A DNA stretch of 64,000 nt, taken from Geosiphon pyriformis uo1. Taxonomy: Eukaryota; Fungi; Glomeromycota. The stretch is from NCBI GenBank assembly GCA_016748015.1, contig JAAOMT010000672.1:443094-507093 (forward strand). The letters are read 5' to 3'. Below the pieces are notes generated by a model. The model did not search any database. It worked only from the letters and a program-made list of their open reading frames with translations, and had not been told where the DNA came from. The stretch's first letter is position 1. The number at the start of each line of letters is the position of its first letter. The position numbers were made by a program, and so were the translations under genes. Below are positions 3,001 to 32,858 of the stretch, one piece after another.

Positions 3001-3492
3001 TAACATTTTTGTTTTAGAAAAATATTTATAGATTTTTATAATTGATTATTGATAACTCTATTGCTTTTTATAATAATTTTTTGATCAATGTTTTAAGCTT
3101 CTGTTAATAATAAAATTATGCCTCCATGTTTTTAAGTATGATTCTTTAAAAAATATGTTTTGCAAATGTTTTAGGAAATATTATGACTCATAATTCAGGA
3201 ACTAAATTAATGATACAATCATAAAAAAGGATCATTTAAATTTTATCAATGTAAATATATCTATAAAAAAAAAGCGAAAAATTGAATAGTGTGAATAAAA
3301 TATTCCATACAAAAGAAACATATAAGCCACTACAAAGATGTTGGTTTTAGGGAAAACAATAGCATCATTTTGTCTTTAACCGAATCACTAGCAAAATATG
3401 ACGATCTTGCTGCTAAAATTTGTAAAAATTCCAACATTAAAAATTCCAACATTTCAATAAGCTACTGAGATCGTGAGATAAGAAGTTAAAAT
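1..3492. repeat. Large fold-back inverted repeat (arms 1-1075/2418-3492 and 1096-1378/1549-1830; 20-N gap at 1076-1095; ~170 bp loop)
   Basis: Position i pairs with 3493-i across 1-1075 (ATTTTAACTTCTTATCTC at 1 vs GAGATAAGAAGTTAAAAT ending 3492). 1096 pairs with 1830. Arms look identical by eye except near the loop. Confidence 0.95.
1549..2853 (+). pseudogene. Multi-exon pseudogene or fragment, possible PD-(D/E)xK (REase-fold) protein; mirror copy on minus strand at ~640-1548
   Basis: GT..AG introns (donors ~1702, ~2400, ~2618) separate coding-like exons: FRQYISQFTKAASNRNQILTLVRKSF; KHKFDGILKV..IILFEFSKG; YLIRPLPSIYLLDEF..IPICFEDFETF. Stops and frameshifts present. Confidence 0.5.
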
Positions 3493-5080: not shown

Positions 5081-5926
5081 GGTTTCTATACTAGACGTTT
5101 TAAGGCTATAATGGAGAACATATGAATTTTCCGGCTGTTATAATTGAGCTATTGAGGTTGTAGAGTTATAATGAATTCATAATTCCAATTATTTCTTATA
5201 CAATTAAATAATCTGAGCATATTTGAAATTTTTGAATTGTATAAAGCTCCACCTCATGATTATTTTTAACGACGTATTAATTAAACAATTAATAGCCGTC
5301 TTTCAGAAAAGATGAAAAAAATCATGGAATCCATATCTCACTGTCCCTCATTATTTTTAAAACAATAAAAAAAATTTCACAAGACAAAGAATAATTAATT
5401 TAACACTGACACTTATGACTAGATAATGGGATGAAAAGTTTTACGATGGGGAAATTATTTTCATTGAACGGATGATTACAGTTTTCTCAATAACAATCAC
5501 AAAACTCTATGCAGTGATATCATTCATGATTACATACATATATATATAATGAAACAGATTGTGAATATTCGAATATGCATCTTAATAATCTTTAAACATT
5601 TTGATTTTCATCTAGAACCATTTTTAATAATGAATAAAAAAACATCCTTATCATCTTTACCATCTTTTGATCACAATTGAAAAGTGGCTTTTGATTTACA
5701 TGAATTTGTTAATGATTCTATTAAAACAAACATTAGGCAAATGTCACAGCAAACAGATGTTTTAGAATTTTCATTGGCGATTGAAGAATGTGCTAACTTT
5801 TAAATAGTGACAAGGGTCATTGTAAATTTTTAATTTTAAAATTGGCTTGTGAAAACTCTCTTTCATAAAAACTATTGTAAAAACATATTTTCCAACGAAA
5901 TTTCATTATATAATAACAATCAAAAA

Positions 5927-21447: not shown

Positions 21448-22904
21448 GGAATTGATTGGGATTAATTTTGAAAGTAATGAGTAATTGTATTTATCATGAA
21501 ACTGAATTATTAATCACCATCATGTCCTCCCACTTACGTTTCTGTATCTCAAATAAGCCCAATCAGTGTAACAATCCAAAATGGGTGATCAGAATTGTTA
21601 TATATCGTTGTTTCTCTTTATAGTACCGCATATAACCAAAAATAAGAAACCTTATTTTCGAAAAAAAATTCTTATTCTATTATTTGAGATGCAATTTAAC
21701 GAATTAAAAATTAATAATCAAACATAGATATAGTAAAATTAAAAAAATAAAGATATTATTTTTAATAATAAATAATAAATAATAATAATAATAAATAGGT
21801 TTTTAAAAAAAATTAAAGGTTTCATATTTTTCAAACTTAATATTATTTTATAATTTTTTTCTAAACTAAAAGTTTCTTATACCTATTTTCTGTCATAAAC
21901 GATATATGACAAAAGTCAAACTATTTTCTACACTATAAAGAGAAATCCAAAAAAAAGATATCTCATCTTATAGTGAATTTATTATTATATTATATAATAT
22001 ACATTATATGTATATTTAGTAAAATTATCAATCAGTTAATATTATTTGATTCTATTTAGCTTTAAAGTTGATATTTACATTAACTTACCGTAAATATCTC
22101 ATTACGGGTGGCTGGTCATTTGTAGACAAAGCGTGATTCACGTTTACTTTTTTCAATTCTTCCAAAACATCTATTTGTTATTATTGATAGTTCTAATTCT
22201 TTAGAATTTTCGGATTTTTGAATTCTTTACTAGTCACTAATTTAAAATTTTTATTTGTTACAATTAAAGAATTTAAATTTTTTGATAATTATTTAATAAA
22301 GTTATATAAGTTTATTTTAATTTATTATTATTAGCAAGAGTAAAATTTACAGTGTATAATTATTGTTATTAGTTAAGATTTAAAAAAAAAGAAGTATCCT
22401 CGCACAATGCCAACAAATTTGAATTGTAATTCAGATTACAAATTTCTAAGCAATAACGGAGAATACAATTTCACTTGAAAGTCAAAAAATTAAACACAAG
22501 ATCTTTAGATTTTAAAAGCTTTATAAACTTTAATTGATGGCTTATAATGTCCATGCTGAGACCTCTTTCCATTATATTAACTTTTTATTGCAAATATGAT
22601 AATTTCCATTTTTATAACATATACTAACAAACTTACTTATGATAATTTTTTATTTTTTTAATTAAACAATATACATGAAAAATTACCAATATGTTAATAA
22701 CTTTTTAGTCAACCAACTATTTCAAAATTGGAGTATTATAAATTGTTTTTCTTACTTGCAAAATTGTGTACTGTTTTTTTAATAGTAAAAATAATATACT
22801 TGCATAAAAATTTTATAATATTATCAAGTCTGCTGTCATATATGCTAAAGCAAGAATAAAATTGTTAAATTATACAAAAATGCCAAAAACTTATTTCAAA
22901 AAAT

Positions 22905-23599: not shown

Positions 23600-24055
23600 G
23601 TCATAATTTCTCACAGTATTAAAAAATTTGCCAACTTAAAGAATTGGATCTTTAGTAGCATGCTTTCTGCTGTCAAACAACTATTCTCAAGCTCATTGAG
23701 TGCCTTTTGAGAAATTCTAATGTCAAGCTTGTTAGAGCGAGCATATTCTCTTTTTGAAATTCTGTTTACCAGCTGCTCGAGATATCTTGAGTTGTTATTT
23801 GTACCAAGAATATAAGCCTGTATCACAGGAAGTTATTTCTGTTAATAAACCTTACGATTTCTGCTCTTGTTATTTGTAGTCAAGAACTAAGCAGAACCAG
23901 TAAAAAGAAGTGGTCAAAAACCACAATACTTCCAGTTTTTGGAAGTAAAAAGTTCCTGGAAAATATTGTGTTTGGGCTGTGTAGAAAAGGGTTATTTAAG
24001 TCAATTCTCAATGAGTAAGCAGAGAACTTGGTGAAAGTAGATGGAAAGAAGATAA
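23600..24055 (+). pseudogene. Frameshifted Cys-rich hypothetical protein resembling a repetitive MRE family
   Basis: Pieces across frames: CQAC*SEHILFLKFC; PYDFCSCYL/CSQELSRTSKK; VVKNHNTSSFW; EVKSSWKILCLGCVEKGYLSQFSMSKQRTW. Family resemblance is from recall, not a search. Confidence 0.5.
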
Positions 24056-24253: not shown

Positions 24254-24615
24254 AAATCAATATTTCATAACCATTTTTGCAATTTCAACTCTTTCTTGCG
24301 GCGTCTTCATATATCTTTAATATCCTCAAGCTCGCTAATACCTTTACAAATCTTTTTAGTTGCTTTGGCTATCATTGGAGCGCCTGAATTTAGAGTGCCA
24401 GCAGATAAACCATCAACGGCAACACCAACAGTAAATTCTTGAAACCACTTTCCGACTTTTTTAACATCATCATCAGTAGCATGGCCAATAATTTCTGTTG
24501 TCGCACTAGCAGCAACTCCAACAACTGTCAATGAACCAGTTATAGCAACTGCTGGAGTAAAATTACTAGCCGTTAAAACCGCAGAACCAATTTTTTGGAG
24601 AAATTCTCCACGCAT
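24254..24615 (-). pseudogene. Small Gly/Ala/Thr-rich hydrophobic-helix protein, bacterial (MRE-like); probable frameshift near the C-terminus
   Basis: ORF 24615-24307 (MRGEFLQKIGSAVLTASNFTPAVAITGSLTVVGVAASA...); a shifted frame continues YMKTPQERVEIAKMVMKY*; no introns. Confidence 0.55.
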
Positions 24616-24823
24616 ATCGTCTCAAAAACTCATTTTTCTAAAAAAAAGCTTTTTTTTTAATAAAAAGGTATATTTATAAGAGTTATTTTTTGACCAAGCA
24701 GTCAGAGATATAAACACACCACAAATATTTTTTCATATATCAAACTCGTACCCTTTTTAACAATACTCTTTAATCAGTCTCATTAGTTTTCTATCAACAT
24801 TCAGTAGCTGCTAGTAATCTAGC

Positions 24824-25030: not shown

Positions 25031-25257
25031 AGTAAACAACCAACTGACTCCCAAGTCAACCCAACAATCAGTTAGGGTTAACAAGCGACCACTTCCAGAA
25101 GACACACCCGGCCACCATTTCAGAGCAATAAAAGACGGAGAAACGATGATTAAAAATCTTGAGCATCCTTAGGAAGGAACACGTGAACTAGGCTATATTC
25201 AAAACCTTTTCAATTACTGATATTTAGGAAGACCTTTATGCTGTTTTGCTGGGATAT

Positions 25258-25575
25258 TCAGCAATCATAATTTGTTAAAGTCAAGGTAAGATGTAAAGCC
25301 TGCTCAATTTTCTTCATTATTTTTATATCCAATTCCCTTATCAATTGTGCATATCTGGTCGAAAAGAATAAATCTTATTTAATTGACTAGTTAAAGATAA
25401 GATAGTAATCAAAGGACTGAATTTGTTTTGTTCGTCATTAAAGATTACCAGCCCCGGATGTGTGCCTTGCAATTCACGAATATATTTTCTTTCTGATTTA
25501 TCAACAAAAAGGTAAATTTACTCAATAGACTTCTCGTTGACTATTATTATTTAACTCTTGGTTTCTTTGCAGCAT
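25258..25575 (-). pseudogene. mazF: PemK/MazF-family toxin (mRNA interferase) pseudogene
   Basis: MLQRNQELNNNSQREVY(TGA)VNLPF / VDKSERKYIRELQGTHPGLVIFNDEQNKFSPLITILSLTSQLNKIYSF / DQICTIDK / ELDIKIMKKIEQALHLTL. These are the collinear PemK hallmarks (RGEVYWV, RPxLVxSNDxxN, xxPLTS, DQIRTIDK, MxxIExAL); three frame breaks. Confidence 0.88.
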
Positions 25576-25790
25576 TTTTATTATTTCGTAAGTCAACAGT
25601 CCTCAATTTCGGCTCTTTCTCACAACTTTGCTTCCTCTAATAAATTGGGGTTGTTAGTATATCTCCTAGACAACTTGCTTCTTCTAATTTCTCCTTCAAT
25701 AATTCATTAATAAACCTACTAATTTTCCCTTTACCAACTTTGTTTAATAACTTCTGATATAAATAAATTGGCAAATGTCCTTATTAGTTC
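25547..25790 (-). pseudogene. Cognate antitoxin (RHH/MazE-like) pseudogene, upstream of and overlapping the toxin
   Basis: HLPIYLYQKLLNKVGKGKISRFINELLKEKLEE / RRYTNNPNLLEEAKL(TGA)ERAEIED / KNAAKKPRVK*. The stop (25547-25549) lies downstream of the toxin ATG (25575), as in type II TA operons. Confidence 0.7.
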
Positions 25791-26568
25791 TAAAAGTAAT
25801 TGTTAAGTCACATATGTATATTTTAGAAGGCATATTTGTTTTTACAAAACAGCATTTCTTTAAAAAAGAACTGTTTGTTTTTCCACATTTTTTGATATTT
25901 TAACACTTTTTGAAACCAAGCTTATTATTCTTGAAATTATTAATTGAGCAAATTATCCTTAAATTCATAAATTTGCATCATTTGCTTGGTCAAAATTGTT
26001 CTTTTTCTTTTAAAATTAGCAATATGCTAATTTAATTTTTTTGTGATATACTGTTTAAAGCGGAACTTGATAAGTGCCATTCAATTAAATCTTAACATTG
26101 AATAATATTTTTGTTAAGGGATCGCTATCTTTTGGGAAAACTGAATAATCTTTGAGTCGAGATTTTAAATAGCATAATCAAAATTATAAAAATACAGCGG
26201 TGTTTTTTAAATAAATATTTTATACAAAAACAAAATGTCCTTTAAGAAATAAATTTGATGTACAATTTTTATAGAATTCTTGAAGATTCAAGTGTTTACG
26301 GGGAGACTAAATATATGGAAACTTATTTTAGCCAAAAATAGTAATTTTATTGAAATTTTAAAACTTAAATTCTTTACCTGATGAAGACGTGAATTGCATT
26401 TGAATCCGTTTTGATCGATTCTCTATGCGTTCAAACCATTTGTTAGGAACAGATGTTGTGAGGCAAATTCTCTAGTTCTTTCATTACATAAAGTTACTTA
26501 CGCGATTTTTTTGACTTTGCTGACTTGCTTTTCTTTTTCGACGCTAAATACCAATTAAATCCTTGAGG

Positions 26569-29500
26569 TCAAAATATAGGAGAAAGCAAGGTGAAATCAT
26601 CATTCGCAGGCTTACCTCTAGAATTCTCGCTTGAAATCACCCTAGGGTCTACCTGAACTGATATTAATCGGCTAACAAATACCGCTTCAGCATGTTGGAT
26701 ATTTAATCCACCATTTTCCTTGCGATCTAAATTTCCAATACGTGTTTTTTCGGCCATTTCAAACTGTTTCTGAATTTCCTCATTTCCATTTTCCAACCAC
26801 CCGGTAAACGTATGTATTAAATCTCGGGCTGTTGGCCGAATCTCGGTAGGAACCCCCCAACATGTTCGTATAAGATTAGCAAAAATCGGGGGCACTTCGT
26901 CAGGAATTTCTGGTCTTAAACCTTCACAAATCTTCTTTACGAGATCAGTCTCATGAGGTACATCACCAAAAGGTAATCTGCCCGTGGCTATCTCATACAT
27001 GATGCTGCCAAAACTGTATATATCAGATGCTTTAGAGTACTGATCACCTCCTAACACTTCTGGAGGTATATATGGAAGTACACCATAAATCTGATGTTTC
27101 TTTTTTACTTCCACAAAGCGCGACAATCCAAGATCACAAATTTTTAGTGATCCAGTTTCCCATAAAATGTTACCACAGTGTAAATCTTGATGTACCATCC
27201 CCGACTCGTGTATCGTCCAAAGAATCCATGTAAGATCTAAAAGCATCTCAACTTTGGCAGTCCATGTAAATTCTGAAAATCTTTTTTGAACGTAATCCCG
27301 TAGATTACATTCAATGAGTTCCATCACAAGGATAAAATCAGACGTGACCGGATCTCGAGTAATTCCAAACCACGTTGGCATATCTGATGTTACTACGTCC
27401 CATTGGCTTTTTAGCTATGCAAAAATTTTCACAGAATTAAGATTTTGAAAATAATCTCAGACACACACCGAAAAATTCTGACAATTACCTCATAAAGAAA
27501 AGACGCGTCCATTCTTTGAGAATTATGTAGGCGTTTAAGGCCGACAGAATGATCGCCATATCTAGTCCAGGTCATCATTTGATCATTCCATACACGAATA
27601 CGACCACCTTTCCAAGTTGCTTTATCTACTGTGCTGTAACCTCCTTTACCAATCAGCTTAAATTCTTCAAATTGATTAAAAGGAATCCATTCAACTATTT
27701 TAATAGAACTTTCAGCCTCAAGTTGAACTTCCCTAATAAAATTGTCAATAGATTCAATCCCACTACTCCATTTCGGAAATTCTTCGGTGAAATGACTAGA
27801 ATTGCAACTTTTGCACCAATCGACACCAGTATTGGCACGACCACACTTTTTACAAGTCCCAAGGTGTGTCAGATCAAAGGTCCAAGAATCTTCACTATGA
27901 GATGTTCGTTTGCTAAGAGGTATACTACGAGTTGTACGTGATTCTTTACCCGTGGATATAATGGAAGTAGTTTGACTTTGGTTACGTGAATGAATTCGTT
28001 TTAAACCAACTTGATCTTTGGAAATGTAATTTTCGAAATTAGGAGATAAAGGTCGTTCATTGCCAGCACTATATCGTCTGAATTTTGAATTCTTCACCAG
28101 CGATAACTCACTTCGACGCCTTTTATTAAAGCTGCTTTCAGATAACGGAAGTTCCTTGTTTTGCGAAATTTTCCCTATTTCAGGCTCAGGGGTTTGCTGT
28201 TTCGTAAAATATTCCTCTGAAGAGACATATTGTTCAAGTGCCACCGTTAACTGTTGTTCCATTCGATCATTGAACGAATTATTCTCGATATTTTCTTCTC
28301 TTAAAGTTGCCAGAGTTTCACGTTTTGTGGTTCGTATTCTTTCTAAAGTTGGACCTTCATCGCTGCCACGTCTACTTGTACGATAAACACTGGGAGGTGG
28401 AGTTTTAATCAAGGAAGTTTCATTCGCTAAACTTTTCTCAAATTCAGAAAGACCAAATTGAATAAAATCGTTCTCGTCATCAACGACAGGAATTGGCCAA
28501 GGTCCATCAGAAATCTCCACCATTTCATTTAATTGATCTAAGTCTTTTATGAACCCATTTTTTAAATTTGAATTCAATAAATCATTGGCAAATTTTTCAT
28601 CGGCTTTCTCCAGAAGAGCAATTTCTTCAGGGGAAAATCTAAACTGTTGATTTGCCTGTGGACTTGAATCAACTGTAAGACGATGATGAAAATGGGTATC
28701 GTCATTGATAAATTCGGGTGAATTTGATGTAATGATCGACTGACGTGAAGAAGATTTATTATTATTCAGTATGCTTGATTTGGCTGAATTTCCCAGGTAT
28801 TCACTCTCGTACGAGCCGACTGGGCTATTCTCGATGCTCCGACTTTCTTTTCTTGCTATTCTTTTATGTGCACCAATTTGAGAATCTGGTCGATTTTTCT
28901 CTTTCTTTAGATGAGCCTTTACTCCAATCTTTGTAGATTTTTGAACTTCGACTACGACATTATCATTATCTCTTCCTTTTGGTTTTGTGGAGACCTGTTT
29001 TTCTTGTTTGACGTTGTTAAAATTTTCCCTGAGAAAGTTTTTTTTCACCAGTTCCCCAAGACCTTGCCCTTTTGGTATTAAAAATTCTTTAAATTTTGGA
29101 AATTGGATTTCATTTTGAGGAGATGGCAAATTTTTTTCCAATACGGTTCCCGTATCATCAGCCAAAGTTTGTTCACGAGTTTTTTTGCTGGAAAGCTGCT
29201 GACTATCCAATGAGCTGTATTCAAATTGTTGAGCTTTATTCCCAATATTAACGCTTTGTTCGTCATTATTGAAATTCGTAGTTATTGATATTTGGTCCGA
29301 ATTTTCTAAATCATTATTTTGTCCTAGTTGGTCACCATTTTCCATGAATTTTATTTCCTGATTATCCCCGAAATTTCCAGGATCTTGTTCTTCTTTTAGA
29401 CCGTTAGGAACTATATCAAATTCTAAAAATTTTGATTTTTCATGCTTTCCATCGTGAGCCACAATTTTTTGGACTTTTCCTGTTACAGGAAACTTTTCTT

Positions 29501-30104
29501 GATTTAAGGACGAGGACAGCTTTTTGGGATAATATAGCTTGTCAAGATTTTTGTTTGCCTCTGATTCTAAGTTTGAAGAAAGGTTCCCACCATACGAGGA
29601 TTCCAATTCACAAATTTCTTTGATACCAACTTCGTCAATGGTTTGAGGGATCTGCATCGGTTGGGAAGGACCGGCCAAACTTGAACCTTCATTCAGACTT
29701 GGAAGCAAACTTCTGGTAAGAGATTTATCGACTGCTTTTTTAGACAATAGTTTCGATTGATCTTGACTTGGCCCTTCACTGAAATCCTCAATCTCTTTTT
29801 CATTTTCTTGAATAGAAATCTTGGAAAGATGATTGACTATGAAATCTCTGTTTTGGTTCTTTTCTTTATTCGTTGTTTTGAAAGAAGGGAAATTTGTTTT
29901 GTCCACAAATTTTTTTATTTCTTTCCAAAATTTTTTCGGAGCTGATTTCGGTTTTCCTTTAACGGCTTCCTTATCTTGAGTCTCATCAGATATTTCTGAC
30001 TTAATTGGAAGATCGAACTGGGAGGTATTTTTATCATGTAATTTTTGCTCTATATTTTGTTCCTTTGAACCAAACTCAAGGGTTTTGCTCGAATTACAAC
30101 CCAT
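26569..30104 (-). CDS. TKL-like protein kinase of the glomeromycotan expanded type, with a long disordered N-terminus; exons 30104-27489 and 27414-~26570; extra 3' exons possible
   Basis: Likely start MGCNSSK (ATG 30104); CKKC..WCKSC pre-kinase motif; GKGGYSTV, VGLK, HQDLHCGN, DLG, GVLPYIPPE, DIYSFG; 74-bp intron 27488-27415 in frame. GTAAGC near 26613 and two small downstream exon candidates could extend the C-terminus to about 26380. Confidence 0.92.
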
Positions 30105-32858
30105 ACCTTTAATGGTGGTGGTGGTGGTGGTGGTGGTGTAAGTGTAGTTGAAAAAAAGAAATGTGGAAGAAAAAAAGGATTTTTTGAATGCGAACAAGGT
30201 TTCCTAATTTACAAGTGTTTCAGGGATAATAATATAATGAATAAAGCAATATAATTATTAGCAGTTCATGCTTTGAAGTATCAAGTTAAAATGAATGACA
30301 TATATTAATACAGAGATTTAGAAGTGGACACAAAAAGATATTCAACTCAGAAAAGAGTATTGAATGCTTTGCTCTACAAAATTAAATCTTTTTAGGTTTA
30401 AAAACTTGTTTCGTTGAAAGAAAGCCGAGCAATTGATTCAAGAACAGGTCAAGATACAAGATTTTAACATTAGAGATTGAAAAGTGAATATCTGATTAAA
30501 TAAGTTGAAACAAGTAAAAGATTTCCTTCCTGTTTGGCATATACCTACTTCACCGGCACGACATTACGCATTCGCCAAAGTTGGAAAAACCTGCATTCAT
30601 CTTCAGAATTAGTTTTGTTAATTGGAGGAGGTCTCTCACATGATAGAAATTTTGGGACGCATTTTTTTTTATTGCCCAAGGATCTTGTAGCAAAGTATTC
30701 ATAACTTTAATTTATCTCCAACTATCCCTGAAAAAGTTTTTTTCTGTGAAACGCATGTTTGGGATTTTCTGCTTACTATATATTTTTATTTTTACTTTAA
30801 AAAAAAAATTCATGAATAGAAAAATATTCAAATCTATGAACCACGGTTAACGATGAACAAACAATGACGCTAAAGACATCATGTTGATCAGTAGACACAT
30901 TATGCAAATAATCATGTTTGAATTTGATTATTTCGAAGTTTAAAAAAAGGAGTCATTTGATGAGTATCAGACGGAATCGTATTTCGAGGTGGGAGGTTGT
31001 CCTGCATGATGATTTATCATCATGCCCAAATGTGGGATCATCATAAAGAAGGATTGAACTGTTTAAAAATCTTATTTATGTGCAGGAAAACTCTTGGTAT
31101 CTTGATTCACATAACAAGATTTTTTTTTAAGTAATTAATTGCACGCTCATTTTTTTAATATTGAAAAAAATTAATGAAGCTAATCACATTATTAGCCTTA
31201 TAAACTAATAAAAGTTAAAGGGAGGAGGGCTACGAATAAGTCTGAGAAAAGCTTAACATTTACCTATTTAATGATAATTATTAAATATTTTCTCGGGTGA
31301 ACTTTGTGATATGATTGATTTAATTTGTCGAATTTTAATAATTTTTAAGTTGTAGATTTGTTTTAGTAAGATTTTTACCCTTTTTTTTTTTTTTTTTGAA
31401 GATGGGAGTTTCAAACCAATGATTTATGTTTACAATTTTAGATCAACTTTTAATTTTCTAATTGAAGGAATTATATTAATAAATTTTAGCTTTTTCATCA
31501 ATAGTCTATTCCGCATTCAATATATAATTTGAAGCAAGCAAGCAAGCAAACAAACAGAAAAAAGTTTATTAATCTTTTATTTTGGTGTGAAGCACGAGTT
31601 CATTAATTCAAATAAACCATAGATAGTTTGAATTAATTAATTTACAAATATTTTTTTGGTGGTAACAAATTTCATCAACCCAAACAGCCAATTATAAAAA
31701 ACTTTTTACAAAAATCTCTATTAATAGATCAGGTGATTAATGTTAGAACTTATTTGGGAAGATCAAAGTTCAATTTATATTCCTTCTCACTATATATTAA
31801 TTAAGGACATGATTAAGTTTCGATGATGATAATGAATTATAAAGCTTTCTTAAATTTTAAATTTAGAAAAACTTAATCTGTACAATTTATGTAGGTTTAA
31901 TGTTTTTGCATTTGCATAGTTTCAGTAGTTATATTTGGTTAATATTTAATTTATCTTTTATCATAACTTTATATTTAAATAAAGAAAACAATATTTTCTG
32001 TTTTGAATAGTTTTCAATTAAAACTTTATTTATTTATTTATTTATTTATTTATTGCTTAAACAAGATTTTAATTTATCTTTATATATTTTTAAAACTAAA
32101 ACTTATTTACCAAAAACCTTCTAGATACTATTTTTTAATCTTTTGTAACAAGCTTTTTCTTTGAATTACTTTACTTGCTATAGAACAGATTTTGTTCTAC
32201 CGTTAAAAAATATTCTTGTTTTTATTTTTTTTTTACCATTTGAAACATTTCTTTAAGCTATAATTTTAGCCATTGAAATTGGCAATAAATGCGGAGAATC
32301 AAAAATTTTTGAAATAAAATACGTAATTAAGCTTTAAAAGGTCAAATGAAAAAATGATTGATCATAGTAAAGAAAACTCAATAGAAACTTTATTTAAAAG
32401 TAAAGAGAGTTATGTGTTCTTTTGTTTCAAATATGAAAAATTTAACAAGCTTTTAACAATAAGTTCTAAAAAGTAAAATAAGGTTTTAAGGGTAACAACT
32501 TGAATGGTATCAAAACCTTTTTTTTTTTAAAAACTATACTTGTTATTAGAATACAATCAATAATTAATCTTTTACCGCGATCACGTTTGATATCTGTCTA
32601 TTATAGTTCATAGACAACAGCAGGAATAAATGAGACAAAAATTTTTTTCTGATGATGAATTTGTATCAATTTACTCTTTACTCACAAAACTAATTCAAAT
32701 CCCAATTAAAAGAATAAAAAGTTTAATAAAGAATATGTAGATATTGAAGTTTCTTAAAGCACAAATTCTAAATGGGTTTTTCAAAGTTGGTAGGTTACAG
32801 GTGATGTTTATCTAAATAGTACAAAAATTTTAGTTTTCTACTATTTGTAACAAAAGAA

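Follow-up and report, generated by a model that had tools for sequence, protein, structure and literature searches.

A decayed mazE-mazF operon of bacterial origin in DNA of the fungus Geosiphon pyriformis

A decayed toxin-antitoxin pair on the minus strand

In the window (the entire 64,000-nt stretch of contig JAAOMT010000672.1 of Geosiphon pyriformis that was analyzed), the minus strand of positions 25258-25790 contains a decayed mazE-mazF operon that is spelled jointly by three reading frames. The best-preserved piece of the toxin shows 72-79% protein identity to nine PF02452 proteins of 102 amino acids (P0001-P0009; E-values from 2.4e-15 to 4e-12) that were found in a word search of 5.8 billion proteins, and the operon is 82% identical at the DNA level, over 523 aligned bases, to its nearest relatives, the metagenome loci L026 and L020. 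The assignment of the toxin to the PemK family, put forward in the preliminary description of this DNA, agrees with a match of a 58-aa piece (25344-25517, minus strand) to the Pfam profile PemK_toxin (PF02452; E-value 2.6e-4, 21.6 bits, slightly below the 23.1-bit cut-off) and with the presence of PF02452 in the intact relatives. None of the five pieces of the window operon has a match in NCBIfam. All the MazF motifs that had been read from the sequence were recovered on the minus strand, each in its place and collinear with the intact 125-aa MazF encoded on metagenome contigs. The upstream frame is indeed the cognate antitoxin, as had been proposed: 43 operon copies on metagenome contigs show this pair, overlapping in the same way. 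This arrangement is kept in the window, where the stop codon of the antitoxin tail (25547-25549) falls 26-28 nt past the toxin ATG (25573-25575).

The toxin relic (mazF, an EndoA/PemK-type endoribonuclease toxin; 25258-25575, minus strand) passes through all three reading frames. From the ATG, the first frame reads MLQRNQELNNNSQREVY, TGA and VNLPF, the second frame continues with DKSERKYIRELQGTHPGLVIFNDEQNKFSPLITILSLTSQLNKIYSF, the third contributes DQICTIDK, and the first frame is then resumed with LIRELDIKIMKKIEQALHLTLTLTN. Compared with L026, the window toxin has lost 3, 44 and 23 nt after positions 25536, 25361 and 25341, respectively, and has gained one nucleotide at 25505; the single-nucleotide insertion and the 44- and 23-nt deletions shift the frame. 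A deletion between the KIYSF and DQI segments had been suspected, and it is real, corresponding to the 44-nt loss, with the 23-nt loss as a further one. The residue read earlier as tryptophan in the motif QREVYWVNLP is a TGA codon (25522-25524, minus strand), located at a conserved tryptophan of the toxin (..EVY-W-VNLP..), and the relatives have TGA in the same column; this codon specifies tryptophan in genetic code 4 and is a stop in the fungal code. The toxin stop codon is lost as well, TAG having been replaced by TAT. With the +1, -44 and -23 frameshifts, TGA at codon 18 and the stop gone, the window contains no intact translatable frame for the toxin.

The antitoxin relic (mazE; 25547-25786, minus strand), delineated by alignment to L026, L020, L025 and L029, shows 62% protein identity to L026 (alignment A4). 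Its N-terminal DNA-binding part (..LPIYLYQKLLNKVGKGKISRFINELLKEKLEE..; 25640-25780) lies in the first frame, the toxin-binding middle part (..NNPNLLEEAKL-TGA-ERAEIED..) in the second, and the basic tail (..NNKNAAKKPRVK, followed by the stop codon) in the first frame again. The start region is scrambled by 8 additional nucleotides that include stops (25779-25786), and deletions of 3, 16, 1 and 1 nt follow positions 25685, 25662, 25597 and 25587, respectively, with the 16-nt and both 1-nt deletions shifting the frame. The in-frame TGA at 25620-25622 (minus strand) occupies the column of a conserved tryptophan (..AKL-W-ERAEIED..) where the relatives also have TGA, and a second TGA, 24 nt downstream, was struck by a 1-nt deletion; TGA is retained at two of the three conserved tryptophan codons of the operon. 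Overall, alignment to the four intact loci reveals 11 indels in mazE and mazF of the window, six of these frameshifting.

The original claim of a decayed type II toxin-antitoxin operon of bacterial origin within eukaryotic DNA is thus borne out by the homology, the code-4 TGA codons and the lesions, and the window pair is most likely a remnant, devoid of function, of DNA passed from a symbiont to its host. The preliminary description correctly recognized the decay of the operon and overlooked both the frameshifts of the antitoxin itself and the larger four-gene island in which the pair resides.

With a profile built from the intact toxins, the first matches are EndoA/MazF of Bacillus subtilis (4me7_A, 4mdx_A and 1ne8_A), at an E-value of 2e-18 over EndoA residues 21-113, and the next are MazF of Staphylococcus aureus and Mycobacterium tuberculosis; in the comparison with PHROGs, the intact relatives are MazF-like (1e-20). 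Two residues, Arg25 and Thr48, are essential in MazF of B. subtilis and B. cereus (PMC7354611). In the alignment to B. subtilis MazF, the catalytic threonine is kept in the window clade, and the position of the catalytic arginine is occupied by histidine, both in the window copy and in all intact relatives (about 40, with HPGLVIS or HPAVVIS). The HP that had been taken for a damaged RP thus characterizes the clade and is not a lesion of the window copy, because all intact relatives have histidine in this position. This presumably endobacterial MazEF clade with histidine at the catalytic arginine position is previously undescribed; it is common in soil metagenomes and absent among the GTDB species representatives searched, and its antitoxin is invisible to sequence profiles.

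Even in its intact form, the antitoxin has no sequence match in Pfam, NCBIfam, PHROG or PDB (RHH_6, E-value 0.11). An AF2 monomer model of the N-terminal 69 residues of an intact relative, built from a 21-row alignment, begins with an extended segment that leads into two helices (pLDDT 86). A Foldseek comparison of this model with PDB yielded no significant match; in an exhaustive VIA-align search, ribbon-helix-helix (RHH) antitoxins rank first, with Z-scores of 4.8-5.8, which is low for a small helical domain. These neighbors are KacA (Z 5.8), ParD-type antitoxins (5.3 and 5.0), B. subtilis MazE (4me7_F, 5.0 over 64 residues), and TacA1 and M. tuberculosis MazE-mt9 (4.8 each). An RHH fold of the antitoxin is likely, judging from the predicted structure. 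The RHH identity assumed at the outset thus stands at the level of predicted-fold neighbors, which are mostly RHH proteins including B. subtilis MazE, and finds no counterpart in Pfam or PDB sequence matches.

The clade resembles the B. subtilis EndoA/EndoAI pair (MazF-MazE, ydcDE; PDB 4ME7 and 4MDX) in having an upstream antitoxin, likely of the RHH fold, that overlaps the toxin start, as well as in the toxin profile match, the conservation of Thr48 and the alignment of the antitoxin model with 4me7_F. Unlike EndoA/EndoAI, it has histidine in place of Arg25, TGA in place of a standard tryptophan codon, and an antitoxin without a sequence-profile match, and the window copy is a pseudogene.

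The island and its fungal surroundings

When the 15-35 kb region and, subsequently, the entire window were compared in six frames (code 4) with the metagenome loci, two further broken bacterial genes came to light; together with mazE and mazF, these make up an island of about 2.2 kb, located at approximately 23.6-25.8 kb. Homology to the bacterial contigs is confined to the interval from near 23.6 kb to near 25780-25830. The third relic (24313-24597, minus strand; tblastn and blastn) is the middle of a protein of a family of about 210-220 amino acids with an N-terminal SYEEFMKTYE motif. It is 50% identical to amino acids 91-186 (of 219) of the product of L074:1441-2097 (tblastn E-value 2e-24), with 72% nucleotide identity over 261 nt and word search matches to P0011-P0013; the N- and C-terminal parts are gone. 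Members of this family are encoded directly downstream of mazF on L027, L023 and L055. The relic now lies within a 102-codon ORF of the standard code that extends from ATG to TGA (24307-24615).

The fourth relic (23611-24049, plus strand), which is spread over three frames, derives from a cysteine-rich protein of about 160 amino acids and is similar to ORFs on more than 20 toxin-antitoxin-bearing contigs, with 42-54% identity at the protein level (tblastn) and 67-75% at the DNA level (blastn). A search against the fungus's own genome revealed stops inside the match. The gene is convergent with mazF, in the same layout as on L005 and L029; the cysteine-rich protein has no match in Pfam or PHROG. 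Finally, a 45-nt segment (25193-25237) appears to be a remnant of the 3' end of an HExxH-motif gene from a code-4 contig, given its 80% blastn identity over 45 nt to L074:997-1040, a match that is weak when taken alone.

The island is located about 468 kb into a 631-kb contig and has fungal sequence on both sides in the assembly. On the right, about 0.8 kb from the antitoxin end and outside the island, there is a fungal protein-kinase exon (26569-27381, minus strand; Pfam PK_Tyr_Ser-Thr, E-value 7e-31), and on the left, Pfam identifies fragments of GCR1_C and P450. The GC content of the island is 0.33, compared with 0.26 for the window. In the 128.3-Mb, 792-contig assembly, the island is present in a single copy, save for the AT-rich stretch 24623-24691, and the genome-wide search for other copies of the operon that had been suggested produced no further PemK match. 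Around the island, only AT-rich chance matches were detected in the search for terminal repeats and target-site duplications, with no junction signature, and no association of the island and its flanks with repeated elements was found beyond that AT-rich stretch. The Rfam search of the 22-27 kb segment of the window gave no match.

Several features of this region deserve separate mention. The stretch 24623-24691 is AT-rich and partly palindromic, and about 50-70 nt of it recur at 83-88% identity on both strands of other contigs (C664, C613, C606 and C469); this could reflect a small hairpin repeat or simply low sequence complexity. In the AT-rich flank to the left of the island, positions 22239-22503 correspond to a dispersed repeat that matches several further contigs with about 73% identity. 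The minus strand of 26569-30197 contains two ORFs separated by 47 nt, the first of 922 codons with no Pfam match and the second, of 270 codons, encoding a kinase domain; the two are probably exons of one large fungal kinase gene, the 3' end of which faces the island.

Bacterial relatives, genetic code and donor

The contigs that encode the proteins found in the word search, together with 47 contigs from a metagenome scan, provided 52 operon-bearing loci. These contigs have a GC content of 0.22-0.36 and carry TGA at the same tryptophan columns, where it is read as tryptophan. When translated with code 4, the loci encode an intact antitoxin of about 95 amino acids and an intact toxin of about 125 amino acids, and gene callers that use code 11 had truncated the toxin to 102 amino acids at the in-frame TGA. 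About 40 of the environmental operon copies are intact, in contrast to the broken copy in the window. On L054, the neighbors of the operon are ribosomal-protein-like ORFs, metS, a uracil-DNA-glycosylase-like ORF, a ychF-like gene and mnmA, and the long ORFs contain two to seven in-frame TGA codons each, outnumbering TGG; L058 and L059 are alike in this respect. A Pfam search with the TGA-free stretches of the relatives' long contigs identified MetRS, MnmA, a Dam-type methylase and, on L059, the alpha subunit of DNA polymerase III. The gene for tRNA-Trp(UCA) was not found in the examined stretches of the long contigs.

In a GTR tree of DNA sequences from 36 distinct operons and the window copy, the latter falls inside a bacterial clade of 22 rows with support of 99/95, and this nesting indicates that the transfer went from a bacterium to a eukaryote. 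The terminal branch of the window copy is long, 0.26 compared with a median of 0.07. In a codon-position test for neutral drift, the changes on this branch are distributed among the three codon positions as 16/7/17 (p 0.30).

Outside the metagenomes, relatives are scarce. Among GTDB species representatives, only actinobacterial MazF with about 30% identity was found, a tblastn search of PLSDB plasmids with the toxin piece gave no match, and no relative of the operon was identified among IMG/VR viral contigs. A phage or plasmid vehicle for the operon is unsupported because the PLSDB and IMG/VR searches were empty.

The most likely donor is a Mollicutes-related endobacterium (MRE) of this fungus or its ancestors. 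This assignment draws on the use of code 4 and the GC content, on the fact that the relatives come from soil and rhizosphere, and on a published record of endobacteria in such a host. PMC13315312, citing Sorwar 2024, describes an MRE population in this kind of fungus, and MRE of mycorrhizal fungi have low-GC, accessory-gene-rich genomes (PMC10507103).

A stretch of about 250 nt just upstream of each bacterial mazEF is conserved (L029:74-340 and 5138-5374; L027:658-900), is repeated within L029 and is not kept in the window. This stretch could represent either a non-coding element or the edge of a module.

Origin and fate of the island

The reading of these observations that we favor, with a probability of roughly 0.85, is that about 2.2 kb of the chromosome of a Mycoplasma-like bacterium that reads TGA as tryptophan, most likely an MRE, entered a fungal nuclear chromosome in a single insertion and has since decayed. 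The transferred fragment would have comprised mazE-mazF, followed by the SYEEFMKTYE-family gene and then by the convergent cysteine-rich gene. In the donor, the MazE dimer would repress the operon through its RHH domain and neutralize MazF with its C-terminal tail, and MazF would cut RNA once MazE is degraded; repression via the RHH domain, blocking of MazF by the tail and RNA cleavage are established for the EndoA/EndoAI family and are applied here by homology. In the fungus, nothing would be expected to work: the fragment would bring no eukaryotic promoter, TGA ends both frames of the operon early, and later indels have broken all four genes in the course of ordinary pseudogene decay after arrival. 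Insertion presumably occurred by end joining, and the island is presumably transcriptionally silent. Nuclear integration is likely, given the contiguity of the assembly and the decay of all four genes.

The idea that inactivation of the toxin was a prerequisite for the persistence of the insertion is unsupported. Under the standard code, the toxin is halted by TGA after 17 codons, so that inactivation was unnecessary; as far as can be judged from the sequence, full-length toxin could not have been made in the fungal cytoplasm from the moment of arrival. A toxin gene can persist without prior inactivation because the genetic code of the donor makes such genes dead on arrival.

One technical concern is that an endobacterial contig or read was misjoined into a fungal contig without any nuclear integration, as documented for Mucoromycota genomes by published cases of MRE contamination and chimeric MRE-fungus assemblies (PMC11423566; PMC10507103). 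The island, however, is only about 2.2 kb long, lies far inside its contig and is flanked by fungal sequence, and given that there is no further PemK match in the assembly, there is no endobacterial contig with the operon to be confused with it. In addition, all four genes are broken, whereas the operon is intact in about 40 copies from environmental samples. Because MRE genomes contain many pseudogenes, decay alone is no proof against an artefact; with the genomic context considered as well, a misassembly appears highly improbable. An integrated island could also have come from a different code-4 bacterium, such as an associate resembling Spiroplasma or Mycoplasma, or have arrived through an intermediate, and it is indeed the case that the relatives are soil and rhizosphere metagenome contigs, that the nearest of these is just 82% identical at the DNA level, and that searches of PLSDB, IMG/VR and GTDB returned nothing closer than actinobacterial MazF with about 30% identity. 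The GC content of the relatives (about 0.30-0.35) and their richness in accessory genes nevertheless fit the MRE of mycorrhizal fungi (PMC10507103), and the host itself is reported to carry an MRE population in PMC13315312 (citing Sorwar 2024), so a different source or route is considered improbable.

Co-option of a part of the island by the host, either through expression of ORF 24307-24615 or through inclusion of the island in the 3' region of the kinase mRNA, would be compatible with this ORF being open from ATG to TGA and with the position of the kinase stop codon, about 0.8 kb upstream of where the island starts. Yet the ORF covers just the middle third (amino acids 91-186 of 219) of a bacterial protein, in the donor, the TGA at its end either encoded an amino acid or lay outside the coding sequence, and the ORF has neither a Pfam domain nor a paralogue in the genome, all of which leaves co-option barely plausible. 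In practical terms, the 102-codon ORF at 24307-24615 should not be annotated as a fungal gene.

The insertion of MRE DNA into the fungal nucleus, as favored here, has well-known counterparts. Similar to Wolbachia fragments in arthropods and nematodes, and to numts and nupts, the island is a short, non-functional, decaying, single-copy piece of DNA from a resident bacterium that is located between host genes and lacks transposon hallmarks; insertions of bacterial DNA into animal genomes have been reviewed (PMC3798261). Unlike these cases, the host is a fungus, the probable donor is of the Mollicutes type, and the genetic code of the donor blocks translation on arrival. The fossilization of endosymbiont DNA in a host nucleus is, therefore, a known phenomenon, and the novelty is modest, consisting in the four-gene structure of the island and the MazEF clade. 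The island adds a multi-gene case for the entry of Mycoplasma-like endobacterial DNA into the nuclei of early-diverging, mycorrhiza-type fungi.

The bacterial context of the operon is itself variable. L029 bears two copies of the whole module that differ in the cargo separating the operon from the cysteine-rich gene, which gives the module the appearance of a variable accessory element in these bacteria. Cargo proteins encoded next to mazEF have SYEEFMKTYE-type N-termini and variable C-termini (L029:6424-6939; L055:3-302 and 3104-3460; L027:1939-2451); one of them ends in an ..AHGGPH.. motif, and the layout is reminiscent of polymorphic toxins. A broader and rather speculative proposal, which we regard as unlikely on balance, is that the island samples a recurrent mobile MRE module (His-variant mazEF, polymorphic cargo and the cysteine-rich gene) that is duplicated within contigs and abundant in soil, and that cassettes bearing toxin-antitoxin genes are preferred in leakage to the nucleus.

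Another relic of the cysteine-rich gene was detected on a different contig, at G000:C722:1129216-1129482 (locus L072, about 1400-1930). It contains internal TGA and TAG stops and adjoins a fragment of an ORF that is present on toxin-antitoxin-bearing contigs (L005:197-1168 and L003:5223-5978). This relic probably stems from a separate insertion event involving the same module and, should the mobile-module proposal be true, would represent the second entry of that module.
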